The notes under the pieces were generated by a model that made no database searches, had not been told where the DNA came from, and saw only the letters and a program-made list of their open reading frames with translations. Of a DNA stretch of 64,000 bases, positions 3,001-64,000 are shown one piece after another. Each line of letters starts with the position of its first letter. The first letter of the stretch is position 1. Made by a program: the position numbers and the translations under genes. Origin of the DNA: Lepidodermella squamata. Taxonomy: Eukaryota; Animalia; Gastrotricha. The stretch covers positions 1,922,001 to 1,986,000 of the forward strand of contig JBLDXI010000003.1 of the NCBI GenBank assembly GCA_047495785.1, in the 5' to 3' direction.

Positions 3001-4639
3001 ACGTGTTCTTTCTTATATATGCTATATGCTACTGAGTTTTCCAACTTGATCCCAGGGAATATTTTGGCATCAAGTCAGATGAAAAAAATTAGATATGAAG
3101 AAAACCTGGGAATTCCCCTCGGCTGCTCCTGGCTTCCGGACGTTTTGCCAGTTGGGAGATCCGCAATTAGGCTCTGGGCAATATTTTAGGCTGAATTGAG
3201 TGGTCCCTTTCAGGCCCTGAGCATTAGGTCTCGAGAGCATAGTCGAAACACCCGAAACCTGGAAAAAAACAAATAATAAGCTAACACGACAACAGTGGCT
3301 TTTGTAATTATACAATGAAGTTTTTCAGCAGATCGACTTGAATCCACTCCAATGGAGTCGTGCTACTTGCTGACCAGCCATGCCATGGGTTCATCAAGTT
3401 AGCATACTTAGCTGTGCGGTTAGCCGTTTCAGTTGATGATTGAGAATACTGGTTATCCCCAAGTTCCATTGCCTCAATGCCCAGTGGTTCTAAAGAAAAA
3501 CGTACAGAATAATAAACAACTAATTCATGGGGTAGGCTCACCGCGGCAGATCGCAGGGCAGCCGTAGTACTCTATTTGAATACCCCACCATGTTTGTTCC
3601 CAAGTTCTCGGTTGAAATCGAACATGATGAACGATTACGGGCTTCCACAAAGTTAACCGGACGGTTCTTGTGTCCTTAGGTGTGTTATGAGAGAAGATTA
3701 CAACGTCACCACCCGGGGACAGATAGTCCTGCCAAGTATTTCCATCCAAGCTGTAGGCTATTGATGATGTGTACGTCCATCCGAACGGTTTCAAGTCGAT
3801 GTAGTGCAGCCATGTGAGAGTATCGAACGAAATCTGAACCGTATATGATATCCAATTAATGATAAGGGCCTTTTGATTCAACGAAAAACTAGCCTGATAA
3901 AATGATGCAGGGTAGCTTGTGCTGTCACCAGCGTAGTAGAACTGAATACCAGTCGACCATGAATCAGTTCCTAGGCAGAATCGGCCAAATACTGGTTTGA
4001 CTTGCGCAGCTGCTTGGGGATAAGCCCCGCTCACAATCTGTTCGTTGCGAATTGCAAGTGCATCATCGTCCCACAGTTCCCCAGAGCCGGACCACGTCCG
4101 GAGGCCCATCGCCTGTGGATTGTTACAAGCTACAAAAAGCGAGTGAACTATCAATTATCTAAGATTATCTAGAATTTACGCTTCGCAATGGTGTTTAGCA
4201 ATTTCTGAATTGCTTTGCTGACGCGAGCTGAGACCTGCTCGCGCGTATCCGGCTTGTTAGAATTTGACACCAAGTCGTAGGTAATATCTCCAGCCGCAGC
4301 CGAGTCTGTTTTCAGCTGGTTGGTGGAGACAGAAACCGAGAACATGGAGCAATTCTTATCAGCCTTTCGAAAATATGCAGCATTGCAATTCTGAGTCGTA
4401 ACACAAGCTGCAGCACAGTGATTTTCGGTATCCGTCGCCAGCCTTAGTGAAAAAATTAAGATTCGGCACGTTGATTTTTAGCATGATTAGCATGATTACG
4501 TTGAGATCAAGTAATTTGAAATACTGTCGCCTTGGAATGACACTATTGGCTTCATCCCAGTCATTCTTGCGAAATGTTTTCCGCATCTGGACGAGCTGAA
4601 GTGAAGCACCAGTAAAATTAACCTGACAAAAACTCGCAT
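1..4639 (-). CDS. Secreted multidomain lectin-like protein, copy A (signal peptide-PAN/Apple-F5/8C x2-F-type lectin N-half-LamG/ConA-like x3-F5/8C...). Runs off the left edge; probable frameshift and premature stop at ~933, so truncated or a pseudogene
   Basis: Hand-spliced start MRVFVRLILLVLHFSSSRCG (ATG 4639). PAN Cys pattern (CAAACVTTQNCNA). Discoidin motifs WIQVDL and VRFQPRTW..IQIEYYGC. LamG-like HIAITY...FRIG...VACVQIYSQALT. Exon-by-exon paralogy with 6036-12987. Confidence 0.8.
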
Positions 4640-5319
4640 TTTTCGATAAATGCCAAATGTTTTCATCAGGAAAAGGGAACATACCCATTTTTTTAAATAA
4701 ATAATTTACTATTCCTTCTCAGGTTGGGAAAAACAGTCTCATATACGTAGTCTTCGCTCGAGAAATTGCGATACCATTGGTGATCGCGCGCAAACTCCAA
4801 CATTCCCGAATGAGGTGTGACCCGGCCGCCGCAAACTCGAGGAAGCAAAATCAATAAGGAATAGGAGCGTATCTGTTTTTCTTGATTGCAAAGTTGCAAG
4901 GAGAATTTATTTCTTGAATGGTGCTGTACATAGCCTCTTTTTACTGAGATCGAAAAAATCGCAAAACATAGCTGAAAAATTGCTCTTACTAAAAGGGGTC
5001 TATGGCGAGGTCTTTGTGACCCCGGTGAAAAGTGCCTGCGCTATGCATTGTGCTTTCAAAGACGTATGGAACTGAATGAAAATGAGAGTAAAATTATTAT
5101 TTGCATTACGGTTGTGAGATTTTTGTATAACAACTGCTCTTCACTTGCTGCTTTCAAGATGAGCTATTAAGTAATAGGAGATTGATCTGACACCGAGTTG
5201 TACATACTGTTTTAACTGTTTTTACTCAGTAGAGAAATGCATCTCTAATTTATTTGTGCTTAATTAGTTTTCACGATATGTTTATAAGTTTCAGATAATT
5301 CAAGTAGATCAGTTAATTA

Positions 5320-5820
5320 CCGTATCGCCTCAAATTGACACCGGAGCTTATAAATTTTGTGGGTGACCACAAAATTCGCAACATTGGACTAGTATTAGAG
5401 AGCGGGCGTCTCTTAAAGGGTGGGCTTATACAGTTTGAAATCCTTGAAACCAGAAATTTACTCTCACGAAATGTGACTTCACAGTCTTATTTTAAAGTAG
5501 CTTGCGCTCCGGTCTGGGCTCAGGGCGGGGTGTTCGCGCGGTGTTTTACGCCGCTCTCATATTTACTGTGTCGCGTAGCTGACCTTGCGCGCGGCCTCGA
5601 AGTCATTCTTGCACTCGCCGGCGTGACCCATAATCCGCATAGACCAGCGACGAGCATAGTGACATGGCCTTACGTGATGTAATAACCCGGGCTACTATTT
5701 GAAAGTGGGCTATTGTAAGTATTTATTTGAGAGTATCTATTTGTTACTATTTGAGAGTATCTTCAGTCGTCATTTAGCTGGGCTACTAAGGAGGGTGGAC
5801 TTCTATTTGATGCGATGCGG
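5320..5820. mobile_element. Tc1/mariner-pogo type MITE (~500 bp)
   Basis: Imperfect TIRs CCGTATCGCCTCAAAT...ATTTGATGCGATGCGG, TA on both flanks, repeated subterminal GGGCT(A/T) motifs, no convincing coding capacity. Confidence 0.7.
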
Positions 5821-6035
5821 TATTTCGAAATTTATGCTGTGAGTATTCAGATGCAAGATTCGAGATTTCACATAATAACTTGATTGTTAACGTAAATTGT
5901 TGTTAGCCCTCGCGTGAGTTTTCTACAGAATTTTAGTGATATGTGTAATAAAGCAGACAACACAATCAAACGTAGCAATGATTATCACGGGAGTCTATTA
6001 TTTCTCTTTCAGAGAGTTTTTGGGCCTGAGTTGAT

Positions 6036-9000
6036 TCAAACAGGGTATACGACGATTTCAGCAACCGGGAGTAGTCCAGGGGTGGCCCGTCTCAGAATAA
6101 CGTAACGTCCATAAGCTGGCTGCAGGCAGAACAGCTCATATGGTCGACTCGCATACCGGTAATCGAATTCCATCAGGGGTAGAACGACGTCGCACAACTG
6201 ACTGGTTGCTGTAATGTTGACTAGGGAGCTTCCGACTCGTAGCTCGGTGTTTGTCAAACTGTAGCCGTAACGATCGGCTGCAATGTAGACTAACACCCTT
6301 GAAACAACACTGGCTAAGCCCATATCGACAGCTATCCACATTTCTGCTGACGGATCTGAGAAATATGGGGAATGAAAGGAGTTTCAGTGCTGATCTCAAG
6401 CAAACCAATGACGTATCCCTTAGCGAGTTGGTAGCTGTAGCCTGCCGCGTAAGAAGCGTTAGATGTAACGTCGACCACAGTCCCAACCGAAGTATCGATT
6501 GCCATTGGTAGGCTCCACGGTAGAGGACCCGAGGTAGCTACGCTTGGATTCCAACCATGGAAGTCACCAATATAACTGATTCCACAGTACAAGCTGTTTG
6601 TAACGCCTTGATAGAACCCAGATATGTCTCCATTTGTCACATTCATGGCTGTCGAGGCGGCGAACTCTCTGTAAAAGTATTAGCAGAATGTCAAGATAAC
6701 AAATCAGGACTCACATATATCGCCGACGCAAAGCGCCACTTGAAGCATAAATTGGTATGTTAAGACTAGACTTCAGTCGCATTGTAGTATCGCTCAAGTT
6801 TTGATAGTTTTGTAGATAGCAGGTACCAGGACTTGTCATAGAGTTGCCAAATTGGCGACGTCTAGGGAGAACTACTGATTTCATGATCAACTCCAACTGA
6901 ACGACCGATCCAGAACAAGATGAGGGTGGCGTGGTCCTGGCAGTCCCTGCCGGTGATTGATCATGAAAATCACTACTTGGCATCTCGAAAGGTGGAACCA
7001 CCGGAGAGCCAATGGTGCATACTTGGCCTGAAACAAAGTTAGAACAGCTAGGTAAACGGATATAAGGTATAAAAACTGATCTTACCGGTAGAAGAAGCTT
7101 CGTTTGCAGCCGTAACGCCGTCAGTAGCTCTGTGCTTAGTTCGTTCTGCAGAAGCATGCGAATTAGGTGCTAAGACGACTTTTCTGTTCAGAGCGAAGTT
7201 GATAGCTGCGGGAAAACATAGTAGCACTTAATTAACGCCTCAAGCCTAAATGGTAGTTACATGGGCTGTTATAAGCCTCGACTTGGCAGATGTCGAAACC
7301 AACGTTCTTATAGGCAGACAGAATTGTAAGGTAACGGCCAGGATTCGAGTATGGATTAACCGTCAGCCTTATTGGCTCACGGTCCATAAGTTCGCCTTGA
7401 GTTATCGTTCTTGCTATTCTTGGATTCGTCAGAGCTGAAGCTACATTAGTCACTGTATTGTTCCCTAATGTCACATCGATTGCTGGGAAAGGAGTGTCCA
7501 TATCTTCAAGAGCACAGCCAAAAATTCTGACTGATAAAGCAATGTTGCCGTTTGCATAGCCAGTAGGATAGATTCGCATGAAACGACCGACGAGAGGGTT
7601 TCGAAGAGGTACCTCCACGATCGTGGTTTTGTCAGTATTTGCTGCGAACTCCTGAACAAAACCATTCTCGCTCTTCAACATTAGCCATTGATTGTTGTTG
7701 AAGCTGTAGCCCAGTCGAAATCGAGTGACCCATCCCGGTTTTGAACATATATTGTTACTCCCTCGCGTTTGCAGCCTTGTAACCCTGGCAATATATCCGA
7801 AAGACACTTGCCAGAAAATTTCACTTGTTGACTCAAATGGATCAGTTATCGTGTAAGACCACATGTTCCCATTTTCAATCAGGCTAGCTTTAAAGCTATT
7901 GCAAGCATTGTCGAAATGGCTAACAGTTATAGCGTCGTATTTCGTAGTGAAAATCAGGCGACGATTGCAGTTTCGAACTGAAAGATTTATTTAGTTATCA
8001 TCAACTAGATTGATTAGAACCGTCCGCAAGAGTAGCAATGAATTCCAAAACGAAAAACAAGGTAGTGGGGGAGACTACATATTCGTTTATTGCTTTTCTT
8101 GCAGATGGTCAAAATAGTACGACAAATACCTTTACAGCCTTTGAATCCAAATCTAAGTGCTGGCCAGCCGGATGAAGAGATAACATCCAAAATTACGTAT
8201 CTCGTTCTCACCGCATACGGCAAACGGTTTTCGACGATTGAATTTCTGTCGTAGTTCGCAGTGAAAACCTTCATCAACGAATTCATTGAAGCAATAAATT
8301 GAAAGGAAAATATTTGATATTACTATATCGGCTCCATTCGGATCCCTCATCCTATAACTGTCATCTGTCATAGTTGACGCTAGATTCGGGCTCGAGAAAA
8401 ATTTCAGCGTAAATGTAGTAACCCATTCATCTGCAACAGGGTTTCCAGCGGTAAGAATCGACCTGATTTCATAATCATTGTTGAATGAAATCTCAACCCA
8501 TACCCCGGAAGCTGAAGGTGCACGCCAGTAACCTGAAATCACGAGGAAAATGATCATAAGGAAAAGCCCATGAAGCAATTGCATTACACGATGGGCTGTC
8601 AATAGTTGGCATTTGGACGCAGTTGGACGTGCTGTCCTGCGACCATATAATCCAGTCTTCATTATGCAGCAATTGATACTCGCACGCACTCGGCGAGACT
8701 GAAAATGAAACAGCTGATTTTTTCCACTTAATAGTGAGGGTATACGTTTACTTTCAACTTTCGAAGGGCAGCCATTCATGATGTGCTGAATAGCATTGCT
8801 GCCCATCGAGGAGTTGTAGACGTAAAAGCAGCTGACCCACATGCTTGGGGATAGTCCCCCAGCATAGTCAGAACCCCCGATTCGATAGCCAGTGGTCGTC
8901 GACATGTCGGCACAGCTGGCATTCGTTGTCAAGGCAACCCGTTTGCTGTTAAAGAACAGCTGTAATTGCGCCGTGACATTATCGTACGACATAGCGTAAT

Positions 9001-12000
9001 GATTCCATATGTTTAGAACTATTGCAGTACTCCAAGTAACTTGATAGGTCGCGCCACCAGGGCACTGAAATTGCCCTGTGCTATAATGAGACATAATTTG
9101 CAATGTAATAATTTTTCGCATTAAACGTACAGAATCCGCGCGGTTGATATGGTGAATGTAATATGGTGAATACCAGCAGCAGTCTTTGTCGCTAGGACGT
9201 AAACAAGTGTGGAAGGCGCACTGGTAAGATATATCCATTCCATGACCGTGAAGCCACCTGTTCTCAACATTTGGCTCGTCTGGGTAATTGTCTGGGTCGG
9301 CTGATAGGTAGCCGCTGATTGGTAACTGTGCGATTTCATAGGTGGAGATACAGAAGGAGCCCAGAGGAAGGAGCCATATTGAGTAACAGGATCGGCTGAC
9401 GTAGCTGCAGGCTCGTCAGTGAACCACTGAGTAAACCGGTAAACCATATCATGCGTCCAGGTTACAACCGGCCGGAGTCCATAAATCGGGCATCGTGAGA
9501 TCTGCTGAATCTCTCGACTCGTCAAAGCTTGGCTGTAAATCTGAACACACGCAAGGCGATCGTTCAGTGTCAATGTCGAGGGCGATGGCAAAGCGCCGAT
9601 TCTGAACTGCCCCGAAGTTTCTAGCTCACAGCCTTGTGGTAGCTGCCTTAACATGGCGAGATTAGCCTCGTGGTAGACAGCAAACTGGCCTGTAGCATAG
9701 TGGTAGGTAATAGCGATATGGCGCAAGCGTTGGATAGTCGCAAGTCTTGAGGTCATGTTTGCACGGAAAACCCCAGTATAAGCCATATTGCGGCAAGTCA
9801 CAGTGAAGTTGAACAGGCCGTCTTTACACGTGACCCCCAGAGAGTAAGCCGGGGGCGAGGCTGTGGGATGGAGGTAGCCAAGAACTGCTTGGGTCGTAGT
9901 TTGAGTCTGGCACATGACGTAGAAACTTATTGTCAAAGCAAACGGTGACGCAAGCTCGCCATTCGAGTTGGGATGGGACACAAATGAGTTGCTATCACCA
10001 TTGAAGATCATCGCTGAATTCGGGTACTTGTTATTTTCGGCTCCAGTCAGGAAACTTCCGATTTGAACACTACTGCCTTGAGTGGCACTCAAAGATGATC
10101 CCATATAGTCATTCAGCACATATTTCGAATCCATGGGCCAAAATACTACCGGGTTGGGAACTGAAATATAACAACTAGTTTTACATTACTAATTTGGAAG
10201 AGGAATTCATTACGCTGCCAGGGACATAGCATAGCATCATCCATTTCGCTTTTCGTCAAAATTCGATTGTACACTTGAACACAGGCGAATTTTCGATCCA
10301 TCAGCCTGTTACTGCTCGCCAAAAATGGCCCAAAAGTTATGGATGTATCGGTAAAAATAATGTTCGTGTAAGATGTAGTTAAGTCGCCAGCTCCAATAAC
10401 TACGCCATTTGCCAGCATGTAATAAGACGCTTCAAGAATAGTGATTAAACAAGCAAAAATATAGCTATTGTTACAAAATTCAACGAACATCTTGCGCGAT
10501 CAAACACAAATCCAATAAAATACCATCGATCGACTTCCAATGGGACGTAGGATAGGCCTTGGCTCGCCATTTTATGACCATACAATGTGTATTGCGAGGC
10601 ATTATTCGTTACTTGATATGCGAGAATGTCATAGAACCTTTTGTATGAGAAATGCCAGAAATCGATCAATACAAAAGCAATATTGTTGTGGGTTATTTAC
10701 CCAGTATTATCATCCGAGTTGAACTGAAGGATAACGGTTGTCGTCGAAGGCCACGTTCCACTACCAATATAAAGCCACAAAAAGACAGAAAAGTCGTTCG
10801 TAGGCGAGTGATAAGCAGCTGTAGGAGCCGTTTTCGGAATAAAAACCGAAGCTGTTTGGGCGGTAGGAGCCAAACGAAAGGCACTTTTGGGTTTGCCAAA
10901 CGGACCGGTGACTAGCTCAACTGCTGGCGAAACAACGCCGTCTGAACCTTGGCCACTCAGATCGTTCGCCATGGTCACGGCATCGAACAGCCAAAGACCA
11001 GAAGGCTCGAGAGCAGAGTACATTCTCGGAGGAGTTATGATGACATCCGTTAGAGATTGCGTGGAACCAAGGTCGATTGTAACATAAGATGGGTTGTTTA
11101 GATCTGGATCGACTCTGACACAAGAACGAAGTCTCCCTTGCGCGTCTCGATTTGGCTGATCAGTCAGTTTTCCATTGTTGGGCCTCATTCTCTGAAATGA
11201 CGAGCCGGTAGAGGACGTGACTGGCTTAAGAATCGCAAGGTCCGAATTGCTTAAGAGCATTGAAGGAATTTCTAAGCGATAAAGAGGTAATCATGTTTTT
11301 ATGTTTCTCTTCACGTTACTACCTCGGCAACCAAGAAGCTCCCATCGAATGCCTGCAACAGTTGTCGACTGTAATACATTCAAGCGAACCATCCTTGCGA
11401 TTATCGGGCCGTCAAAGAATGAAGTTGTATAATAATCTCCCGAATTGGCGCTCGAAAACACCTGGAAAGAACTTCTCATGGGAAATGATGTATAAATTTG
11501 CGAGCCAAACCTGAAAATCGCCTTCACTTGCCCCCGTTCTTCGAATATCTTGCCATCTCGATGAGCCTTCCAGCTCCGAACGGTACTTCAAGCTGAATTG
11601 AGTTGCTCCTTTGAGCCCCTGAGCATTAGGCCTTGATAACATAGTCGAAATTCCCGTCACTATAAAGTTTTTGAGCAGATCAACTTGAATCCACTCGAAT
11701 GTGGTACTCGCTGCTTGCCATCCATGCCACGGGTTGTTCAAGTTGGCGAACTTTGCTGTTCGATTTGCTGGATCAGATGAGGATTGGGAAAACTGATTGT
11801 CACTCAGTTCCATAGCTTCAATACCGAGAGGTTCTGGACGGAAAATCACGAGAATCAACATCTTGCTTACATTACCGTAAACCTTACCGCGGCAAAGCGC
11901 TGGGCAGCCGTAGTACTCTATTTGTAATCCCCAGTCTCCATTGGGTAAAAATGTTCTTGGGTAAAACCGAACGTGGTGAGCGATGACAGGCCTCCACAGA

Positions 12001-12987
12001 GTTTGTCGAACAGTTGCAATGCTGCCACCCGTTACTGTGTGAGAGAAGATTACAACATCACCAGATGGAGATAAGTAGTCCTGCCAAGCAACTCCGTTCA
12101 GGCTGTATGCCATGGATGAGGTGAAAGTCCATGCAAAGGGTTTCAAGTCGAAGTAGTGCAGCCAAGTGAACGTGTCAAACGAAACCTAGTAAGAACTATC
12201 TCAATCTAGGAACTTCTATTCGAAATGATACAAAACCTGATAGAAAGACGCGGGAAGGCTTGCGCTAGACCCAGCGTAATAGAACCCAGACGTGTTCGAC
12301 CAAGTATCGGTGCCGAGGCAAAGCCTGCCAAATATAGGTCTGCTTCGAGTGGAGGATTGAGGATTAGCTCCACCCAAGATTTGGTCGTTCCGAATCGCAA
12401 GACCGTTGTCGTCCCACAATTCGCCTGAACATGACCATGTCCGCAGCCCCATAGCCTGAGGATTCGCGCAAGCTAAAACATTAACGATATGAGTATGATT
12501 CAAGGTTCGAATATCAAGCTACGTTTAGCGATAATGCTCAGCAAGTTCTTAACGGCCTTCCGACTCTTCACCAGGACTTGATCCCTGGTTTCGGGTTTGT
12601 TCGAATTCGAGACCAAGTCAAACGTCATGTCACCAGATGCAGCCGAATCGGTTGTTAGCTGGTTAGAAGAGACGGAAACTGAATACAGATTGCAGTTCTT
12701 ATCCGATTTCCGGAAGTAGGCTGCATTGCAGTTTTGAGTTTTGACACAGGACGCTACGCAATGATTTTCAGTTTGCATAGCTGACCTTTATTCGAGAATT
12801 TGAAACGTTGACGGAACCTTTGGAAATTATATTTCAAGAATTACGATGTGATCAAGTAGTTGTTGATGTTATCTCCTTGAGACACTACGATCGGCTTCAC
12901 TCCTGTCATTCTTGCGAAATGCTTTCCGCATAGCACAGATTGGCTCATCTGTGAAATTACGAGAAAAGCTGCCCACAAAATTAGCAT
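6036..12987 (-). CDS. Secreted multidomain lectin-like protein, copy B (signal peptide-PAN/Apple-F5/8C x2-FTP N-half-LamG/ConA x3-F5/8C x2-FTP C-half-further FTP-like domain(s)); multi-exon, apparently complete
   Basis: Start MLILWAAFLVISQMSQSVLCG (ATG 12987). PAN (CVASCVKTQNCNAAYF). Four discoidin domains (e.g. WVTRFRLGYS...RFMRIYP...VRIFGC). Three ConA-like domains. C-terminal fucolectin-like WIAVDMG...ELRVG...GRYVIL...VAEIVVY; stop at 6036-6038. The junctions I checked join in frame via ~50 bp GT-AG introns. Confidence 0.88.
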
Positions 12988-49471: not shown

Positions 49472-50496
49472 ATGTCAACTAAATTACTTGCCCTAGTTTT
49501 TGGACTTGCAGCAATTGAGTCGTCCATGGTAAGCAGCCATTCTTAACTGTTCAATCACACGATAAAGCATTTATGTTTTAGGCGATTTCCTTTGCTGGAG
49601 GGGTCGGTTACTCCCCATTCCATATGGACGAGTACTACAATGGTACTAGTGAACAATACGCTGCAGGAATCGATCAAGATTTCGCACAAATCAAGCAGTA
49701 CTATCTCTATGTTCGAACGTACGCCACAAAGCGTAAAGGAGTAGCTTTCGCTCCTATTGCAGCTAAGCATGGTCTTAAACTCTACCTTGGCCTCTACGTC
49801 ACTAAGGAATCTTGGTATCAAGAGCAGTTTGATGCAGCTGTCGAGGCTGCGAAATACAACAGAAGTGCTATTGAGGCAATTATTGTTGGAAATGAATGCT
49901 TCCCCGATCCTTTCTCTGCTGATGAGATGATCGAGAGAATCCAGGCTCTGCGCAAGAATTTGACAGCTCAAGGTATCACTGACATTCCGATCGGTACCGT
50001 CCAGACCATTGGAGACTGGGCCCCGAAGAATAACCAGACCCGCCTCGCCCAGGCTCAGAAACTTGGCCAGGCGAGTGATATTATCGGGGTCAATATCTAC
50101 CCGCTGTACAGTTCAAACTACGACCCGAAAAAGCCGACTTATTCCTTGAATCAGAACTGGAACCGAATGATGGATACCGGCGGCTATCCTGCCGACAAGA
50201 TTCGCTTGACTGAAACTGGCTGGCCGACGAATGGTACAGACAAACCATCGTCGGGAAATGTGCCAAATATCACGAATTCCGTCAATTACTTCCGCGGATT
50301 CCAAGCGTGGCGACCAAATCGTGGTAAGGATGGAGCGCCTGCCTTCTGGTTTGCGTTCTACGACGCCAATCCGAGGGAGGGCACTGGTTACAAGAAATTC
50401 TTCGGCTTGAGAGACTACAAGCGACAGGTCAAACCAGGAGCTCCTGCAGACTACCCGCCAGTCGCGAATCCGCCGAATTACCCGACATTTGGCTGA
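49472..50496 (+). CDS. Secreted GH17, copy 2 (exons 49472-49528, 49582-50496)
   Basis: Signal exon MSTKLLALVFGLAAIESSM; same catalytic motifs as copy 1. Confidence 0.92.
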
Positions 50497-51081: not shown

Positions 51082-54000
51082 ATGAGCATGAAGGCGCGAT
51101 TTAACGTAGCCGCTACAAAGGTGGCCAACGTATCGCGCCTGCACCTCGCCATGCAAAGCATATCTAGGACAGTATCGGCAGAATCAGAAGGCGATGAACG
51201 GCAGCGGGAGCAAGAGCAAGAAAAACAGCGGCGTGGCGATCATTCAGAAGAGCCGTCAGTAGCGTCGTCACAACTCAGCATCAGGTCAATCCACCAGAGG
51301 CCGAATTTTCTCCGCAGTTTTATACACATTCGAACAGCTGTACGGCGATTTCGTAGCCTCGGAAGAATGAACGACGACGCTATGTCGATCAGGACTCGCC
51401 TCAGTGCGATTTCTGATGAAGATTTGCTTGATTCTGCTTCGGTCTATCGGAGTAGCAGTGTTCCGGGTTTGAACAGGCTCGATCCGACCGAAGCTGCCTT
51501 GCGAGACCCAGCGATGGCCAAGAAATTGATGCTGATCGTAGCTGCGAAGAAGGGCGAATGGTCCTCGGTGGATTTGATGTTACGTGGCATGAAAAAACAC
51601 TCGTCACGCTTGAATGCGGCTGACCCAGCGACTGGAACGACGACGTTGATGCTAGCGTGTCAGCAGTCTCGGTTTTTGCTGGTTGGAAGAATGTGTGAGT
51701 TGGGGGCGTGGCTCAACCAGCGAGACGAGGAACGCAGAACTGCCTTGCACTACGCAGCTCGAGAAGGACATGAGGGTGGGCTGAGTTTTCAACCTTTGTC
51801 CTCCAAGTGCTCTTTCCTAACTATTTTTTCACACAGAAATAGTTAAGCTGCTTCTTCGCAACCAAGCAGATCCGAATTTGTTTGGAGGGGTAAGTAACGT
51901 AGTAGTTTATGTCTTTCATTCCACTTTCAAAATCATCAAGACATTTGAATTTTGAATTTCGGAATGTTATGCAATGCTTCTTCATTCTTCAGAAAGACAA
52001 TCAGCTGCCACTCCACATCGCAGCGTTGCGGACGGGACCCGGTGCTTTGGTCTCTGCGCAGCAACTACTTCGCTCCTCACTCAAAGAGTGCCGAACCAAA
52101 AAAGACCGACTTGGCAACCTGCCAATAACCTACGCTGTCGAAATCGGCAGCCACACTCTAGTGCGAGATTTACTACAACACTACGCAAAGGAGCAGGTTA
52201 CATGGCGGGACGAACACACCGGCGACTACTTGGTTCATATCGCCGCGAGGAAAAAATTCACTGAGATTATGAAATTACTATGTCTCCTGGGCGGCGCTGA
52301 TCCTAATGTTCAAAATTTAGACGGGCAAACTCCATTACATATTTCGGCGAAATTAGGCGATGAAGCTATGTTTAGGATGATGCAGTCATTTCGACCTAAC
52401 CCGGATTTGATTGATAAAAAGGAGCGAAGTCCTCTCCACGTTGCGGCCGAACACGGCCATGCTGAGATTGTCGAAAGTCTCGTCGAGAGATTTCGCGCTA
52501 ATGTCCATATGAGGACTAAGGATGGTTCAACGCTGATGCACCTTGCGGCTGATAAAGGATTCACGGATGTCGTGCTGGCCTTCATCAAGCGAGGGGTGAC
52601 GCTGAATATGCCGAATAAGGCCGGTGCGTTGTGTTTACACGCGGCGGCGCAGAATGGGCACATTAAGGTTGTGCGCACCCTGATTAAAAATGGCGCATAT
52701 TTGGATGCAAGGACGCGCGATGGCTACACTGCGCTGCATCTATCGGTTCTTCATACGAGGCCAGAAATCATACAAACGCTTCTAGGTAAGAAAATTTGGT
52801 AAGAGAATGTATTGCATAAGTGTGTAATGAGCTCGTATGAATTTTCAGGCCAAGGTGCAAAAGTTGACCTCAAAGGTGGTCCTCTTCGCGAGACCCCACT
52901 CCACATCGCAGCTCGTCTCCCCGAAGGCTACCTATGCGCAGATATGCTCATCAAAAGCGGCGCCGGTGTGAACAACACTACTGATGAAACCCTCGAAACG
53001 CCCCTACACATCGCGGCCAAAAGTGGTATGATCGATCTATTGAAATTGCTTCTTGAGGAAGGCGCCGATCCTATGCGAATGAACAAATCCGGCGAGTCAG
53101 CCCTACATATGGCCGTTCGGCATTGCCACTTCGAAATCGCAAAGGCCATTATTCAGTTCGTCAACTCAATTTCATCAGGTCGAGAGGCGACTAATTTGGT
53201 GAACTTGTCGAATAATGAGGGCGAAACTTGTTTCCATCTCGCCGCCGAGCTTGGCAAGTCGCAGATGCATCATCCATTTGAAGACGTCGACATTATCCGG
53301 CTTTTGCTTGAAAATGGGGCTGATCCTTTGGCAAATTCTAAATTGACGAATGAATCATCGCTGCATTACTGTGCGCGGTCGGGGAATCCGGAGATTTTTC
53401 ATGAGATTGTTCGACATTTGAAGCATAATTTCCAGACAGCTTGTAACAGACAGGATCGCATGGGCTGGTCGCCGGTTATGACTGCGTGCTATTCGGGACA
53501 TGCTTCTGTGGCGGAAATTTTACTGGCTAATGGGGCCAGGGCGGATGTGTTTGATGAGGTAAAGGAGACAATTTTCGAAGTTTGGAATTTTATTTATTAT
53601 CTATTCCCAGTTTGGAAAAGCTGCTCTGCATCTTGCGGCTGAGAATGGTCACGGTTCGTGCTGTGAGATCCTCCTTAAATACAAAGCATTCGTCAATGCC
53701 AAGTCTAAACTCGGAATTTCAACCCTCCACTACGCCGCACTGAGTGGCCATGCCGAGTTGGTTGGTCTTCTTATTCGAAAGTACAACGCTTCCATCAATG
53801 CGCTGTCCTTGGATAAGAAAACGCCGCTGCATATGGCAGCTGGAGCTGGACGAAAGGAAGTCTGCCAGCTGCTGATGAATCTGCGAGCAGATGCGGATGC
53901 AATAGATGCGGTAAATACATTTTCGTTTCTTGTGAACATACAATTTTGAAAATGTTGAATACAGCTTGGTCAAACGCCGCTTCATTTGGCTGCGGAAAAC

Positions 54001-57000
54001 GACCATTCGGAAGTTGTAAAATTGTTTATAAGATACAAACCTGAACTTGTCACAGCTGCGAGCAAGGTAAAAGCAGTTTTTCCTAAATTTACAAGAAAAA
54101 TTGATGAAATTACCGAAAATTACGTCTTGATTGATAATTCCAGAGTGGCATGACCTGTGCTCACATTGCGGCAAAGAATGGAAGTGAAGCCGTTATAAAA
54201 TTGCTTATGCAATTCAACAAATCCTTGGTCACAACCGTTCGGAATCCTGTTAATGAAGCTTTGCCCCTTCATCTCGCCGTGAGCGCGTCGCACGAGTACG
54301 TTGTTAGGCTTCTAATTGATGCTGGCTCATCGCCTATTGCTGAAAACCACGAGGGAATGACTGCTATTCACATGGTAAAATAAGCAAACAAAATTCGCGC
54401 TTTTTCATTATTTTGACCAACAATTTAGGCGGCAAAAGAGGGGGATATGGAGGTTCTACAGGCTATTATTGCTAGTTCTCCCCGTGGAGCATTGAAAACT
54501 AACAGTTTAAAGGTAAGAACTCATTTCGGAAAATTTCCTATTTTCACAGAAATTATATTTAGAATGGAATGTCTCCGCTACATTCCGCGGCATTTTACGG
54601 CAAGTCCGAGATTGTTCGCGAGCTTCAAACTCGAGTCGACGTCAACTCGAAAACGGACCTGCCTCAAATGCCTGGCGTGGTCAGCGATCCAAGTTTGAGA
54701 GCTCTGATCAGCGCTGATGTAAGATAGATCTACATCAATTTTCAGATTTCTATTATTTCCACTTCTAGCATGGCTTGACTCCTCTTCATATGGCGTCTTA
54801 CAGTGGCCATGAAAACGTCGTTCGATTGATCCTTAATAACTCAAGTGTCCAAACCGAAGCATTCTCGGCATTATTAGCCCGAGTGCCTTTACATTATGCC
54901 TGCCAACATGGACATCTCGTAGTAGTAAGCCTTTTGATGTCCCGCTCGGCTGGTCACCTTCGGGCTGAGGACAAAAACGGCTGTACTCCTCTACATCTCG
55001 CCGCTGAGAATGGCCACGCCGAAATGGTTTCGACGCTATTAGCCCAAGGGTCTGATATCAGTAAGGCGGACGCTGATGGCCGAACAGCGTTGCATTGTGC
55101 TGCTGGGAATGGTCATTTAGTCGTAGCTCAGATCCTACTCGAAGCAGGAGCTGTTGCTAATGCAAAGACGAAAGACAACAAAACACCCCTTGCTCTTAGC
55201 GCGAAGGGTGGCCATACCCAGGTCTTCTATTTCCTGTTGAAAAAAGAGCATGATACTGATGAGCTGATTGAGGACAAAGCCTTCCTGATGGATCTGATGC
55301 TTTGCGGAAAGCAGAATCAAAATCAGATCATTGATGAATTCATCCTTCATTCAAAAGCCCCGTTAGATACGGCGGTCAAGTTAGCTGAGCTGTTCCATGG
55401 TTTGGCTTTGAGGGAGAAGGAAAGGGCGAAAGATTTGGGCGAAATTTCCCGTCACTGCGAACGCATGGCTGCCGAGCTCATCGGAATCGCATCAACCATT
55501 GCCCCTCCTGCAGTAATTCTCAGGGCTACAGACACTAAGGGGAAGCAAATGTTGGATATTTTGCTGCAGTACGATATGAAAGAGGTCGTTGAGCACGCGG
55601 CTGTTCAGCGGTATTTGAGTGACATTTGGGCTGGGCCGATGACTAACTGGTCGATGGGTCGTCTGTCGCTGCTCTTCTTCGGCTTCTTGACATGCCCACC
55701 ATTGCTGTGCTACTTTTGTCTACCATTCAAGCATCATAATTATCACCACATTCCCATCATCAAATTCATGGCGATGCTTACGTCTCATTTGTACTTGATC
55801 GCACTTCTTTCGGTTGTAGCTGCCGTCCCACTTCATCCGATAGTTTACCGAGAGGATTTATATCCCATATGGTGAAATTGTTAATGTTTTATATTCCTAA
55901 TTTCTAAGCTTGGTCGAAACAAATAGGTACGAGCTACTTTGCTTAGCCTGGGTATCCGGAATGCTAGTAGCTGAGTTGACTCGCCAAAATCGGTCGACAG
56001 GACTCGGAATGTTGCGATTCATTATCATCGGCTGTTCAATGGTAGCGATATTCCTTCATATTGGGGCAATAATTGCGGAGTAAGGAATCGAATTTTGTTC
56101 TCTTTCCTAGTAAAAGATGTGATAATTTTTTCTTCAGTGATGTTTATAACGACCGGCCCTCTGCAGCCATAATAATGTATCTGCGAAATTTCATGCTGTC
56201 TCTTGCACTTCTTGTGGCCATCGTTATGATCCTGGGTCTGTTATTCCCAAGTTTAGCTATAAATAATGCTGACCTGATTTGATTTTCAGATTTCCTTCAG
56301 ATTCATCACCTGTTCGGCCCCTTCGGCATCATAATTCTCAACGTTATGGTTGATCTTATGATTTTCATAGTGGTCCTGTTCCTTTTCTTGATTGCATTTA
56401 CATTCCTGATTTGCTGCTTGTTCGCGCCGATCAAAAAAGATCCAATGCCTGCCGCGAATACGACAAATATGACGAATATGACAAATCAAACCATCGCTGA
56501 TTCTGGCCAATTGCCTCTTCTGAATATTTCAAATTCAAGCAGCGAGCCGATTATTTCCTCCGGCTCGGGAGAAGGGCCTGAGGAAATTCCTGTAACAACG
56601 ACTCAATCTGGATCAACACGAAAAAAACGAGAAGCAGAAAAAAGTGATGAGAACTCAAGCAAAAAGAGCCAACCTTCCTGCAAGCCACGAACGGAAAAGG
56701 ATACTGGTGGCGAGAAGTTGAAGCGCAAGAAAAGGGACGCTGATCAAAAGCCAGATTACACGGCTTATGGCCGTGTTATTGTCAATACAGACGATCTCAC
56801 TTACATGAGTAATGAGTTAGTTAATTTAATAATTTTATTTCAATTTATTGGTTTGAACTGGCTGGTTAATTCTCCAGAGATCCTCAAACGTTGATCGAGA
56901 TTTTCTTAGCGCTGTACTGGGCGATGTTTCAAATGCTTGACTATCCAGGGGCTCTTCCTCAGATCAAGAATGGCCCGGCCTGGGCTGATACCCTCTATTT

Positions 57001-57646
57001 GATTTACATCTTCATGTGGCTCACGATATCTGGGATAGTCCTACTGCCTCTTCTCATCGCTATTCTGACTGAAACGTACAAAATGGTTCATATGAGATCT
57101 GAGACCGAGTGGAAATTCGTCAGAGCTACTTTGATACGAGACATGATCAAGTTACCTGCGGCTCCTACTCCCCTCAACCTCATTGTCAGGCCGTTTCTCT
57201 ATCTTAGATCTGTTCATAAGCACAAAAGTAAGAAATAATTTCATTTTACTCATAATTAACTCGGATTTCTTAACAGAGCTGATGTGCACACCTTACGCGC
57301 AATATTATTTGGATGAGGACGAGCATGAAGGAGCTGATGAACTCCTGCAGACCCCAGAAGCGTCTGGTGCCCAATCTGGCGCGGCAGGTAAGATTTCTCA
57401 GTCATCTCAGACCTGTTGATCCTATATGATGCCTTTTGATCAGGAAATACCGGCGCAGCGACTGAACAGAAGAGCATTGGTTTAGAGCTTCTAGAGAACG
57501 TTTTAGATTGGTCTATTGTTGTAAGGCGTTATCGATCTGGTATCAAGGGAGAAACGGACGAACAAATGGCTGAGGAGGAAGAGCAGGCCGAGCTCGAGAA
57601 AGAGGAAGGCGCGGCTGAGGCGGCTGCCGCTGCGCCAAATGCTTAA
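51082..57646 (+). CDS. nompC: TRPN/NOMPC-family ion channel, paralogue 1 (multi-exon)
   Basis: Long ankyrin array with NOMPC signatures (RTKDGSTLMH, ETPLHIAAR..G..CA.ML.KSGA, ARADVFDE.GKAALH), LFGPFGIII, EWKF TRP box, APTPLNL, ENVLDW..V.RYR; stop at 57644-57646. Confidence 0.93.
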
Positions 57647-57847
57647 ACATTTCACAGTAGAATTCGATATTTTTCTGTCCCAACTTCCGTCTCACATGAC
57701 AAACTGTCACACGTTCAATCCTGTTTTCGCTCTCTGAGAGTGGTATTGTGATCTGTAAAATGTATGACTTCCTTAGCAATAGCAACCATCGAAGGCAATA
57801 AATAGCACGATTCTCGGCGTATTCTGTTTATTCACCACAAGTCAAAC

Positions 57848-60800
57848 ATGGCTAAATCCGCGGCAAAATTAGCCCTTTTGAAGATGACTGTGCCTGGAAT
57901 GGCATTTGCTTCACATGACGGTGACGCAAGTGGTGCCGAAACTGATAGTCTCGCCGGTTTTTCTCGCAGTGGATCCGTTTTTTCTACTCGAACTGATCTG
58001 CAATTATCAGGCTCTTTTATTACAGCCCCCTTAACGCTTGCCGCAACGCAAAACGGCGGCGCAATGCGCGGTCTTATGGGCGTCTCAACTGCTATGAAGA
58101 GATTCAAGAATCGCAAAGATGAAACTCCGGTACAGACAGATGACGAACAGCGTGACTCGGATCCAGAGGATAACAGTATCAGGTTGAAGAAAAGTGGATT
58201 TTACTTGCTAAGAAATCGGCGAAAAAGCGAGCCGTCGCTCTACGGTGACTCAGAATCGACATCACGCCTCGAAGAGTCAGCTAGCTCCGCGAAAAGTAAC
58301 CAAGCCACTCTATCGTCATCTTCACATTACATTTATACGCCACCACCTCAACCTCCTGAGCCTCCAGAACGAATGGCGTTGGTCTTGGCTGCCAAAAAGA
58401 AAGATTGGAATACAGTTGAGATCGAGCTGAAAAAATGCAAAAGATTTGACCCGAGGATCAACATGGCTGACCCTGAGACAGGTCAAACCGCCTTAATGTT
58501 CGCCTGTCAGCATTCAAGGTTCTTGCTGGTGGGTCGTTTGATTGAGATGGGAGGTATCATGAACCTCCGTTCCGAAGATCGGAGAACAGCGCTTCATTAC
58601 GCAGTAGCCGAAGGGCATGAAGGTTTGAATTCAATAGATTATATAACCCTAATTAATTTCTAAGTCTTCTAGAAATCGTGAAAATGCTCTTGAAGAAAAA
58701 TGCGGACCCTAATCTCTTTGGAGGGGTAAGACATAATTTTAATTGAAATTGTAGGCTTTTAACGTTTTGTGGCAGAAACAAAGTCAACTTCCGCTTCACA
58801 TTGCTGCTCAAAGAGCTGCGACTAGCTTAACAGCGACTCAAGTCCTTCTCAGATCCGGATTTAAGGAAAATCGCATTAAGAAAGATGGCTCCGGAAATCT
58901 TCCAATTACTTACGCTCTTGAAACTGGAAATCCATTGCTTGTAAAGGAAATGTTGAAGCATTTTACGAAGGAGCAAGTTTCATGGAGACACGACCATTCA
59001 GGCGAGCATTTGGTTCACGTGGCTGCCAGGAAGCAAAACACTGAGCTGATGAACATTCTCTGCTCCGAAGCTGGGGCTGATGTGAACGTTCAAAATATCG
59101 ACGGTCAGACACCGCTCCACATTGCAGCAAAAGTTGGCGATGATGCGATGATTCGAGTTTTACATAATTTCAAAGCGGACCCAGATTTGATTGATAGAAA
59201 AGAACGTACACCTCTTCATGTTGCTGCCGAGAATGGTCATACCCATACGGTTGAGAAACTCGTTGAAAAACTCAAGGCCAACGTTCATATGAGGACTAAG
59301 GATGGTTCGACTCTGATGCATCTCGCTGCTGACAGGGGTTATGCAGATACGGTCCTCGCCTTCATAAAAAGAGGAGTTCCGCTTCACATGCCCAACAAAT
59401 CAGGGACCCTGTGTCTCCACGCCGCTGCTCATAACGGACATGTCAAAGTGGTTGAAACCCTGATCCAAAAGGGATCGCCTGTCGACGGTAGGACGAAGGA
59501 CGGCTACACAGCCCTGCATTTAGCTGTTTTGAACGGGAAACCTGAAGTTATTCAGATTTTACTGGGCTACGGAGCTAAGGTTGACCTCAAAGGTGGCCAA
59601 GCTAGAGAAGCCCCGTTACACATCGCATCCAGACTTACTGACGGCTATCGATGCGCTGAAATGTTACTGAAAAGTGGGGCTATGGTAAATATCAGCACTG
59701 AGGAGAGCCTAGAAACCCCTTTGCACATATCAGCGAGAAATGGCTTCCTTGACCTGCTTAGAATGTTGTTAGAGGAAGGTGCGGACCCGATGAGGCTGAA
59801 CAAGTCCGGGGAATCAGCCCTTCACATTGCTGTACGACACTGCCACTATGAAATTGCAAAAGCTATTATCGCGTACGTAAATGACACGACTGGTGGTAGG
59901 GAGGGGGCTAATTTGGTTAATCTAGCGAATAACGAGGGCGAAACTTGCTTCCACCTAGCTGCGGAGTTGGGTAAGTCTCAAACGCATCATCCTTTCGAGG
60001 AGATAGACATAATGCGGTTATTGCTTGAAAATAGAGGGGATCCACTTTCAGTAACGAAATTGACTAATGAAACATCACTGCACTACTGTGCTAGATCTGG
60101 AAACCCAGACATTTTGCAAGAAATAGTTAGGTTTCTAGGCCATGGATTCCAGTTAGCCTGCAATAGGCAAGATAAGATGGGTTGGTCTCCCCTCATGGCA
60201 GGTTGTGAACAAGGGCATCAAGTTGTTACTGAGATATTGCTGCTAAACGGAGCTCGAGCTGATGTTTTCGATGAGGTATAAGACTACTTAGTATGTCATA
60301 CTGTAGTTCACTCAATAAAAATGTTCCATTTCAGCATGGAAAAGCTGCTCTCCACCTGGCAGCTGAAAATGGTCACATAGCTTGCTGTGAAGTTCTGCTT
60401 AGTTTTAAGGCCTTCGTTAACGCAAAATCTAAACTTGGAATTACACCTTTGCACTTTGTAAGTTTCGACTTTTGACCAAACATTTCAATGGATTAAGGTT
60501 GAGTCATTGTTTTAAGGCTGCTCAAAATGGATACGCTGAACTGTGCAAATTGCTGATCGAGAGGTATCACGCATCAGCAAACGCTCTTTCGCTGGACAAG
60601 AAGACTCCTCTCCACCTGGCAGCTGAAGCCGGGCAGAAGGACGTTTGTCAACTACTTCTCAGTCTATATTCTGTTCCGAATGCAGCTGATTCGGTTGGTT
60701 TCCCATAATCTATTGTCCAAATCAAGTTTCATTCAGTTCTTCATCAGGGAAAACCTGTGGAAAAAGCTAATGAGGCTGATGTAAGTGATTTTAATCAAAA

Positions 60801-63800
60801 TCTGTCATATTGCGCTAGAAGTTAAAGCCATATCAAATTTTTCCAGCTTGGGCAAACACCTTTGCACCTCGCAGCAGAAAATGATCATTCTGACGTTGTC
60901 AAGCTATTCATGCGATATAAGCCCGAGCTTGTTACAGCTGCTAGCAGGGTAAATGATCCAATTCTCTAGTTTCACTTTTCTCAGTTATTATTGAATTTCT
61001 ACTAAAGACCGGCATGACATGCGCCCATATTGCTGCTGGCAAGGGATCTGTCGCGGTGATAAAGGAACTCATGCGCTTCAACAAAGCTCTGGTAACAGTA
61101 GCTGTAAACAAGGTAAACGACTCCCTACCACTCCACCTGGCCGTAAGTGGGGGCCACAAAGATGTTGTTCGAGTCCTTATCGAAGCTGGATCTTCAGCAA
61201 TCGCCGAAAACGCCGAAGGAATGAATGCAATTCATCTTGCAGCTAAGGAAGGAAATCTCGTGGTTCTCCAGGCGATTCCAAGAAAAGTTTCATTGAGTGC
61301 TTTGAGCCATAAGGTATAGGCCTATATGCTACATTCTTACAACCATAAAGCCCCTCATTTTAGAATGGATTGTCACCAATTCATGTTGCTGCCTTCTATG
61401 GAAAATCTGACTTCGTTCGGGAGCTTCAAAACCGAGTCGACATCAACATTAAAACTAACCCACCTCAACTAGCTGGCGCAGTTAGCGACATTCAGCTGAA
61501 GTCTTTGATAACTATGGATGTGAGTTTCGGCCTCAATTGATAAACATTGTGTTTAAAATGATTTTATTAGTTTGGCGTGAATCCCCTGCATCTCGCTAGT
61601 TTCATGGGCCATGAGAACGTGGTAAGACTCGTCCTGAACAATTCGATGGCTCGAATTGATGACGTCACAACACTGTTGGCCCGAGTCCCTCTTCACTACG
61701 CGGCTATGAATGGGCACCTAGTTGTGGTGAGCCTGTTGATGTCTCGATCAGCAGCTCACCTTAGATGTAGCGATAAACGTGGAAGAATGCCACTCCATCT
61801 TGCTGCTGAGAATGGTCACGTAGACATGGTCTCCATGCTTTTAGGACAAGGTGCTGAAATAAACGGAGCAGATCATGACGGATGGACCCCTCTTCATTTT
61901 GCTACAAGAAATGGCTTCATTAAAGTCGTGAAGCTTTTGACCGAATCAGGGGCATCTCCGACTTCAAAAACCGCTGATGGGAAAGTTGCTTTAGTTCTAA
62001 GCGCGAGTGGGGGTCACATCGAAGTTTTAAATTATCTCCTGAAGAAGGAACACAATTCTGACGAATTAATAAGCGACAGGAATTTCCTACTCGACTTGAT
62101 GATTTGCGGAAAGACTAACAGCAACGAGTCTATCGATAACTTTGTTATGCATTCGGAGGCTCCATTATACACGTCGACTAAACTTTCGCGGGCTTATCGA
62201 GAGCTTGCTTCAAAGGAGAAAGAACGAGCGAATGACTTGAATGAAGCTGGTCGGCATTGTGAGAACATGGCGACTGTATTGTTGGGAATCGCCTCTACCA
62301 TAGCGCCGCCCTCTGCGATATTACGAGCTGTTGATCCAAAAGGGAAGCCACTGCTCGACGTTCTGTTGGAGAACAACATGAAAAAAGTTGTGGAACATGC
62401 AGCTGTTCAACGTTACTTGAGCGATATTTGGGCGGGTTCGTTGTCCTCGTGGTCAACTGGCCGGCTTTTCTTACTGTTTCTTGGTTTCTTATTCTTCCCA
62501 CCATTTATGTGTTACTACTGTCTTCCGTTCAAGCACCATTCCCATCATCAGATTCCTGTTGTGAAATTCATAGCCATGGTCACTTCACATCTTTATTTAA
62601 TCTTATTACTGTCTCTTATCGCTGGAATTCCTATTGACCCAATCGTTTATCGAAAGGATTTTTACCCGAACTGGCATGAATTAGTGTGCCTTGCAATGGT
62701 ATCGGGCATGATAGTCTCGGAGTTGACCAGATCTGGCATGTCTTCTGGGTTAGGAATGCTCCGCTACCTCATAATCTTATTCTCGCTGTTGGCTTCGTTG
62801 TTGCAGATCGCTGCTATAGTCGCCGTGTAAGTTTTTAAATTTCTAAGCTCGATTCTAATGGCTTACTATCCTTTTTCAGAGCTCACGATGCAAGACACGA
62901 AGCTTTGATACTGATGTATCTGCGCAACTTAATGCTTTCTTTTGCATTATTGTCTGCGATTATTCTTATTGTTGGTAAGTTGATGGCCTCATAATTTCAC
63001 CTGCAGATCATTGTCGATTTTTTTCAGATTTTTTCCTTATACATCATTTGTTTGGACCATTCGGAATCATCATTCGAAGTGTTATGAGAGATCTTGCGAC
63101 ATTCATCGTTGTTCTGTTCCTTTTTCTTATCGCCTTCACATTTCTGGTCTGCTGCCTGTATACACCGATCAAAAAAGACCTTAGCAATTCACCTGGAAAT
63201 GGGACTATCAGGAACTTGACCAATCAGACTGTTGAGACCACGGTAGCTCAGGATTTTCAAGGCGAGCATTTCCTAGTGGACTCAAGTGCGCAATCAAGTG
63301 GGCATGGAGATCCTGATTTAATCACGCAAAATTCCGAAAAGAGCAAAACTAATGAAAATCATGGAGGAAAACCCAAACAAAAGCGATCAGCCGACAACGA
63401 GAGACCTGCCTGTAAGCCGAAAACGGAGAAAGCCGGAGAAGAAAGTAAGGCTAAGGAGTCTAAATCTAAAAAGTCGAGGCGCAAGAAGCGTTCGGCAGAT
63501 CAAGAAGCGGATCCTTCGCCTAATTACGATGAAAGTTACCGGCTGGTAAAAGATGACAGCGATTATAAGATCGTCAATAATTTGCAAGTTCAAGCAACAT
63601 TATAGCGGTGAATTAATGGTTTGTTAATTTTCTAGGAACTACTCAACTCTGATGCTGCTGTTTGAAACGTTCTACTTCTCAATGTTTGCCATGATACCGC
63701 CGGAAATGCTGCCACGTGTGAAGAACGGACCAGAATGGAGCGAAGTGCTTGTTCAATTGTGATTTTCTTCATCTTTCATCGTTCAGATTTCGCATTCGTG

Positions 63801-64000
63801 GCTTTTTCAGGTATTTCGCTTGTTGGATGCTGGCAGCTGTTGTCATCCTAATCCCTCTTCTCATTGCCATGCTATCGGAGACATACAAGCGTATCAATCA
63901 AAGATCGGATGCTGAATGGAAATTTGGCAGGGCGAAATTGATCAGAGATATGATAAAGCAGCCGGCAGCTCCTACACCCCTCAACCTATTCGTTAGGCCC
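57848..64000 (+). CDS. nompC: TRPN/NOMPC-family ion channel, paralogue 2 (multi-exon, runs off right edge)
   Basis: ~29-30 ankyrin repeats by manual count, S1-S6, EWKFGRAKLIRDM, APTPLNL; collinear with paralogue 1. Confidence 0.93.

Follow-up and report, generated by a model that had tools for sequence, protein, structure and literature searches.

Two TRPN-type channel genes, arranged head to tail on the plus strand of a 64,000-nt stretch of the Lepidodermella squamata genome (contig JBLDXI010000003.1; hereafter the window, in whose positions all coordinates are given), carry a long hydrophilic loop between the fifth transmembrane (TM) helix, S5, and the pore helix. As anatomy, this loop is well supported as a lineage-specific extracellular turret of NOMPC/TRPN-type channels, and its motifs suggest that it is probably glycosylated and probably cut by a proprotein convertase. 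The first paralogue (g1, ~51082..57646) was modelled from a chain of open reading frames (ORFs), tblastn collinearity with frog and beetle TRPN (residues ~20-1518), and ankyrin matches in Pfam, and encodes an ankyrin array, linker, S1-S6, TRP box, and C-terminus up to a stop codon at 57644-57646. The second paralogue (g2, 57848..64000) leaves the window inside the TRP domain. Both genes consist of many short exons, with the eight modelled introns measuring 52-71 nt.

The proposal in the initial annotation of this DNA that both genes are of the TRPN/NOMPC type was borne out by the structural matches and by collinearity. The g2 exon running from the ankyrin repeats to S4 returned Drosophila NOMPC (5VKQ) as its top match among solved structures (E=2e-173), and the linker-S4 region alone matched 5VKQ at E=7.5e-53, compared with 7e-7 for the next family, TRPC (TRPC6). 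The g1 S6/TRP-box exon, in which EWKF is present, matched 5VKQ residues 1526-1610 at E=4e-14, compared with 9e-9 for TRPM2. Collinearity with full-length frog (P0002) and beetle (P0003) TRPN holds for both genes, starting at the first ankyrin repeats and reaching the TRP domain, and the ankyrin region itself follows these proteins over residues ~20-1312 in g1 and g2 alike. Pfam returned only ankyrin families for the large exons (up to E=3e-100) and a weak Ion_trans match for the S6 exon; a crude motif count gave approximately 20 or more ankyrin repeats, and the NOMPC array has 29. Because 5VKQ is the best match and the collinearity extends over the whole length, g1 and g2 are, by sequence, full-length NOMPC/TRPN-type channels (g2 as far as the window end).

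In both genes, S5 and the hydrophilic loop share one exon and one open frame. The g1 exon (56290..56808; AG acceptor, GTAATG donor, 172 codons without a stop) encodes the S4-S5 linker, S5 (56364-56423), the PIKKD motif (56427-56441), and the entire turret, which spans 127 codons from PIKKD (56427..56808) and 122 aa beyond it. A modelled 71-nt GT..AG intron (56809..56879) restores the frame into the exon for the pore helix, divergent filter, S6, and TRP box (56880..57227), the same exon that matched NOMPC 1526-1610. The corresponding g2 exon (63028..63583) encodes the S4-S5 linker, S5 (63102-63161), PIKKD (63165-63179), and a turret of ~139 codons from PIKKD (63165..63583), or 135 aa beyond it; it is followed by an exon for the pore helix and filter (63636..63758), placed by alignment, and an exon for S6 and the TRP box that is cut by the window end (63811..64000). 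Between turret and pore helix, g2 was given a putative 52-nt GC-AG intron (63584..63635, GCAAGT donor) because no other short intron restores the frame, so the end of the turret exon at 63583 depends on the use of this candidate junction. The loop coordinates of the initial annotation needed only slight correction: the motif positions were correct, whereas the g1 exon ends at the GT donor after 56808 rather than at 56816, and the g2 end at 63583 holds only with the GC-AG intron. Approximately 77% of loop residues in g1 and g2 are polar or disorder-promoting, and no membrane-like segment was found in either loop (top 19-residue Kyte-Doolittle means of 0.27 and -0.14; every hydrophobic window in the hydropathy scan was <=0.86).

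Although the loops are mostly unalignable between paralogues that share 54% identity overall, the initial annotation had described a common series of ordered elements in them, and each listed motif was found in place. The g1 turret holds, in order, a cluster of six N-X-S/T sequons (56457..56540), SSGSGEG (56556-56576), a first convertase-type site TRKKR with EA after it (56616..56630), a seventh sequon (56652-56660), PSCKPRTEK with the sole Cys of the loop (56673..56699), a second convertase-type site KRKKR followed by DADQ (56721..56747), and a PDY..GRV motif directly before the pore helix (56751..56783). The g2 turret holds three sequons, NGT, NLT, and NQT (63198..63230), then SSGHGD (63294-63311), a first basic site KQKR followed by SA (63375..63386), PACKPKTEK with its Cys (63405..63431), and a second convertase-type site RRKKR followed by SADQ (63477..63503). 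At all four basic sites K-R is followed by E/D/S, then A, then D/E. The furin consensus is accompanied by a non-hydrophobic P1' residue in g1 (RKKR-E, RKKR-D) and g2 (RKKR-S), with KQKR-S being weaker than the consensus, as its P4 residue is Lys and not Arg. The two basic sites bound a tract of 35 aa in both genes, with the Cys motif inside it; within this tract, the Cys stands at position 17 in one gene and at position 9 in the other, and conservation is limited to C-K/R-P. There is a single Cys per loop, and the modelled S1-S2, S3-S4, and post-filter segments of g1 and g2 contain no further extracellular Cys. An island of the form [KR]RKKR[DS]ADQ is common to both genes within otherwise unalignable sequence.

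Motif enrichment was assessed against composition-preserving shuffles of each loop. R-X-[KR]-R occurred twice in g1 against 0.03 expected (P=0.0003), and [KR]-X-[KR]-R three times in g2 against 0.19 expected (P=0.0005), confirming that the furin-type motifs of both loops are non-random; as the shuffles preserve composition, these motifs are no by-product of a Lys/Arg-rich loop. The seven g1 sequons likewise exceeded the 1.75 expected (P=0.0001), but the three of g2 were not enriched (1.9 expected), so that the clustered sequons described earlier are present in both loops and above chance only in g1.

A full-library search with the linker-S4 region returned no close full-length relative (best match <=45% identical). 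The TM regions of 24 matches were aligned, one of which ends before the segment of interest. By the same alignment metric, the S5-to-pore-helix segment measures 133 and 146 aa in the window genes and 13-35 aa in 20 other TRPN sequences, whose sources, where looked up, are frog, two nematodes, a hairworm, the rotifer Seison, Hydra, and a horseshoe crab; the longest of the others were 67 aa in beetle and 61 aa in a paralogue of the tardigrade Paramacrobiotus (P0037). In Drosophila NOMPC, S5 ends at ~1461 and the pore helix begins at ~1498, leaving a linker of ~36 aa, in line with the earlier statement that its outer loop is much shorter. The linker of the beetle homologue P0003, the only NOMPC-type linker that was read, contains no Cys, sequon, or RXKR. 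By these sequences, the turret is absent from the sampled TRPNs of other phyla, and characterised TRPNs do have far shorter loops on the outer side.

Long-loop relatives were recovered from one other organism. A 416-aa fragment (P0001), 63% identical to g2, led to contigs from three ENA metagenome samples, which constitute the lineage sampling and in which three TRPN genes (relA, relB, relC) stand in tandem; a further search added relD and the more distant relE, both from these samples. When JGI metagenome contigs were scanned, neither the S5-loop alignment nor the linker-S4 alignment recovered a relative; a protein search with the g2 loop exon returned no match, and the relB exon retrieved nothing beyond itself and a single paralogue. 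In a maximum-likelihood tree, g1, g2, and relA-relD form one clade (support 99/98) with relE as its sister (100/98). All six clade members have loops of 79-135 aa beyond the S5-proximal motif. In relB, relC, and relD, S5, loop, and pore helix lie in one uninterrupted ORF, which rules out the loop as an intron in these genes. The turret/pore-helix boundary, intronless in these three genes, has the modelled GT-AG intron in g1 and the putative GC-AG intron in g2, in different phases. On the contig of the related organism (L001 1-18524), the three long-loop genes form a head-to-tail series with very little intergenic sequence between them, as in the window; the array therefore either existed before the two organisms diverged or arose in each separately. 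The S5-pore loop of relE (L008 6600-8128) has ~48 aa and four Cys (CPD..DCIC..GC), pointing to a compact turret held by disulfides instead of an extended disordered one. The Paramacrobiotus contig BHEN01000166.1 (1-12024) also carries tandem TRPN genes, one with a short typical loop, and the 61-aa loop of P0037 is acidic, with GSGEG and EKREAE echoing g1, no Cys, and an odd S6. On the strength of this resemblance a tardigrade origin of the window was considered and rejected: P0037 falls outside the long-loop clade in the tree (with weakly supported placement), and its loop has no Cys.

Comparison of the six loops distinguished what recurs in the clade from what is confined to the window genes. 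The single Cys is the only invariant loop residue (6/6), usually in the context C-K/R/T-P/I with basic residues nearby. Sequons are present in all six loops and are enriched over shuffles in g1, relA, relB, and relD, though not in g2 and relC. Five of the six also retain a P-D/N-Y...G-R-x-V motif, Arg included, ahead of the pore helix. Canonical furin-type sites occur in four of the six loops, at varying positions relative to the Cys: basic sites flank it in g1 (RKKR twice), in g2 (KQKR, RRKKR), in relA (VKR and RTKR, the latter as RTKR-E, 16 aa apart), and in relC (RAKK and RKTR, minimal R-X-X-R without a canonical site), whereas both sites of relD (KRRRKR and KARKR, with RRKR-S) come after the Cys and relB has none. 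Among the basic sites, the one that recurs most lies after the Cys and ahead of the pore helix; it is canonical in g1, g2, relA, and relD and minimal in relC. A site pair that would excise the Cys does not recur across the clade; in relD, where both sites follow the Cys, it would not be excised. The initial annotation had offered two further ideas that fail as conserved features. Excision of a ~35-aa Cys peptide fits only g1 and g2, given the absence of sites in relB, the minimal sites of relC, and the site order of relD. The Ser-Gly/acidic motif is likewise restricted to g1 (SSGSGEG) and g2 (SSGHGD), with none in relA-relD, and Ser-Gly proteoglycan attachment was rejected as a conserved feature.

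The pore itself is divergent. Alignment showed that g1 and g2 depart from the canonical TRPN pore signature (LFF-x-LFGL filter, S6 LINLLIAMM), with AMFQML and SMFAMI replacing LFGL and LLPLLIA or LIPLLIA replacing LINLLIA, and they are therefore divergent TRPN members rather than typical ones. The S6 change to L(L/I)PLLIA is found in all six long-loop paralogues (window 56880-57060 and 63636-63900, and the relatives), and the filter Gly is gone in most of the six (AMFQML, SMFAMI, AMFAMG), relC retaining FGM.

Sequencing run X1 behaves as RNA, with GT..AG joints that skip 66, 59, and 52 nt in g2, including 63758->63811 as modelled, and with loose ends that agree with the g2 junctions 62826/62880 and 62974/63028, the latter at the start of the turret exon. 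One X1 contig lies on 63414-63553, within the g2 loop and across its second basic site. Confirmation of the exons by RNA is thus partial: a portion of the g2 loop is present in an RNA-derived contig, but the 63583/63636 junction was not seen in the X1 reads. In run X2, two haplotypes differ at 11 of ~80 bases at the start of the g2 loop (63149-63227), causing six amino-acid changes within 16 residues, yet all three g2 sequons persist; the haplotype differences listed in the g2 ankyrin/linker exon are all at third codon positions. Two metagenome variants of the relB loop exon differ at 12 synonymous and 6 conservative non-synonymous codons, compared with 11 synonymous and 0 non-synonymous in the relB ankyrin-to-S4 exon, indicating that the loop is constrained, but less so than the core. 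Together with the open frames and the X1 contig, these substitution patterns show that the turret is coding and under some constraint.

The loop can be placed on the outer side (the lumen of the endoplasmic reticulum (ER), then the cell exterior) by homology with the NOMPC topology, with which the sequon excess and the lack of a hydrophobic segment agree; this orientation is inferred. The turret is also predicted to be intrinsically disordered. In an AlphaFold2 (AF2) model of the relB S5-loop-pore exon, confidence (pLDDT) was 85-93 for S5 and 31-42 for the loop (mean 49), although the model covers a fragment and was built from a six-sequence alignment, making low loop confidence a weak sign of disorder.

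Taken together, we favor a reading in which the turret is glycosylated and is cut by a convertase at one or more sites, the one closest to the pore helix included, yielding a two-chain channel, and we give it slightly less than an even chance. In this clade, the short S5-to-pore-helix linker has expanded into an extracellular turret of 79-135 residues, predicted to be disordered, which would be N-glycosylated in the ER. The lone Cys probably forms an intermolecular disulfide, either between subunits or with a partner or matrix protein, as the subunit has no other extracellular Cys. In most paralogues, the basic site that separates the Cys from the pore helix would then be the target of a furin-type proprotein convertase acting late in the secretory pathway. 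Cleavage of the turret there would leave a mature channel of two chains, one extending from the ankyrin array to S5 and bearing a glycosylated Cys arm, the other comprising the pore helix, S6, and TRP domain; in g1 and g2, a second upstream cut could additionally free the 35-residue Cys-containing tract. A cut turret is judged most likely because a canonical R-X-K/R-R motif in an accessible lumenal loop is a textbook substrate of furin-type convertases. Several points weigh against this reading. Glycosylation, disulfide formation, and cleavage are all read from sequence, and the disorder of the loop rests on the six-sequence fragment model. The relB loop has no convertase consensus and site geometry differs among paralogues, so that cleavage is evidently not essential for the clade, and the basic clusters could act in binding rather than be cut. 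RNA coverage amounts to ~140 nt of the g2 loop and zero of g1, and the junction to the g2 pore exon needs an unconfirmed GC-AG intron. Channel function is itself putative, given the divergent pore, in which Pro takes the place of the S6 Asn and most members lack the filter Gly.

Two alternatives would deny the turret a specific role. The loop might be spliced out as a long intron that opens at a weak donor where S5 ends and runs up to the pore-helix exon, in which case the turret would be an artefact or a minor isoform. Both genes do have a frame-compatible GT donor directly behind the S5 CC(L) (63158 -> 63636 in g2), but these donors are poor (GTTCGC, GTATAC), and the intron would measure ~470-480 nt, about eight times the local norm set by the eight modelled introns. 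Moreover, all six loops are open in frame, for which chance gives, by rough estimate, ~5e-4 per 130-codon stretch at the base composition, relB, relC, and relD are intronless between loop and pore helix, and the X1 contig lies inside the g2 loop. This explanation is scarcely credible, and loop skipping as the main form was rejected, as the single ORFs of the relatives weigh strongly against it. It has somewhat more in its favor to regard the loop as a tolerated, fast-evolving, low-complexity insertion in which sequons, basic runs, and Cys are incidental or merely aid folding and export. Most of the loop is unalignable between paralogues 54% identical overall, the two g2 haplotypes differ at six amino acids within 16 residues at the loop start, the loops vary between 79 and 135 aa in length, and relD has its motifs in a different order. 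A freely drifting insertion nevertheless sits poorly with a Cys that is invariant across six paralogues, the [KR]RKKR[DS]ADQ island kept by g1 and g2, motif counts well above shuffles, the constraint suggested by the 12 synonymous versus 6 non-synonymous differences in relB, and g2 sequons that were retained despite adjacent substitutions. We consider it decidedly improbable.

Two other alternatives accept a functional turret and differ from the two-chain reading in what happens at the basic sites. The turret might remain uncut as a glycosylated cap or tether, whose Cys cross-links subunits over the pore or binds a matrix protein and whose polybasic runs bind sulfated glycans of the matrix or cuticle. 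The Cys as the sole invariant loop residue in six paralogues, in a subunit with no other extracellular Cys, speaks for such an arrangement, the sequon enrichment fits an outward-facing loop, and the runs of four to six basic residues (RKKR, KRKKR, RRKKR, KRRRKR) resemble heparin-binding-type patterns. NOMPC is, furthermore, located at the contact between the cilium and the NompA matrix, where Lee et al. (2010) described "limited extracellular exposure" and noted that no direct link between any mechanosensory channel and the matrix had been shown (PMC2882365). However, an exposed R-X-K/R-R in a disordered lumenal loop would normally be cut in the secretory pathway, AF2 predicts a disordered loop and not a folded cap, the Ser-Gly glycosaminoglycan motif is restricted to g1 and g2, and the partner protein is only hypothetical. 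An uncut turret is thus unlikely overall, while retaining a real share of the probability. Activation in the manner of ENaC would instead involve cleavage at both basic sites, with release of a 35-residue inhibitory Cys tract turning a latent channel into an active one. In ENaC, a channel tied to mechanosensation or epithelial transport, two basic convertase-type sites flank a 20-45 aa extracellular tract in the alpha and gamma subunits, and double furin cleavage is established to free the inhibitory tracts (PMC10178586). The g1 and g2 loops resemble this plan, with two RKKR sites in one and KQKR plus RRKKR in the other, exactly 35 residues apart around the conserved Cys motif and far above shuffled counts. 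The geometry is not conserved in the clade, however (sites after the Cys in relD, none in relB, only R-X-X-R in relC, a 16-aa tract in relA), the one invariant Cys would be thrown away, the tract is poorly conserved beyond C-K/R-P with its Cys at position 17 versus 9, and no pocket for it is known. ENaC also differs in having an unrelated trimeric DEG/ENaC fold with its tract in the finger domain, whereas the present sites belong to the pore turret of a TRP channel, which is tetrameric, vary in geometry among paralogues, and are cut only by prediction. We regard release of an inhibitory tract as improbable.

Other channels offer partial parallels to the turret. The K2P cap, a folded helical hairpin of ~60 aa with an intersubunit disulfide, is likewise an extension of the linker from the outer helix to the pore helix above the pore, with one conserved Cys per subunit. 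The single invariant Cys in six loops invites this comparison, but the turret is predicted to be disordered, putatively glycosylated, and rich in basic sites, its disulfide is hypothetical, and a helical fold is unsupported by the weak AF2 model. Large glycosylated extracytosolic caps over a TRP pore are found in the TOP domain of TRPP/PKD2 and the lumenal domain of TRPML, and TRPML1 is proteolytically cut in its lumenal loop; these domains, in contrast, have a defined fold, are inserted between S1 and S2, and occur throughout their families, unlike a predicted disordered turret between S5 and pore helix in one clade. The pore turret of TRPV1 and TRPV2 (~20-25 aa) is likewise flexible, connects S5 to the pore helix, and influences gating and the action of toxins, and we know of no report of its cutting by a convertase. 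Drosophila NOMPC/TRPN1 (5VKQ) itself shares the long ankyrin array, linker helices, six TM helices, TRP box, and outward S5-pore linker, but this linker has ~36 aa versus 133/146 aa, and its filter FGL and S6 Asn are those lost in most members and replaced by Pro, respectively, in the lineage of g1 and g2. Within the paper library searched, nothing relevant was found that combines TRPN or TRP pore loops with furin or proprotein convertases.

Elsewhere in the window, an intron-less ORF just upstream of g1 (49624-50496) has a weak match to GH17 glucanases (Pfam E=2e-6, just below the family cut-off). On the minus strand, 933-12146 contains duplicated genes in two near-identical copies ~8 kb apart; judged from their translations alone, these are putative discoidin/F5-8 type C and pentraxin-like or lectin-like genes.

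NOMPC/TRPN is the textbook example of a channel gated through an intracellular ankyrin tether, and its outer face has been considered minimal. What is new here is a TRPN clade with an expanded and probably processed extracellular turret. The turret could serve as an outer gating element, with the four lone Cys joined by disulfides into a lid above the pore or bound covalently to a matrix protein, and with convertase cleavage arming a dual-tethered mechanotransduction channel that passes from a latent state to one pulled from outside as well as by the ankyrin spring inside; we offer this as a speculation with only a small chance of being correct. The clade provides a natural test case for whether a TRPN can be anchored, capped, or proteolytically matured from the outside, and it could reveal if a TRP subunit remains functional once divided between S5 and the pore helix.

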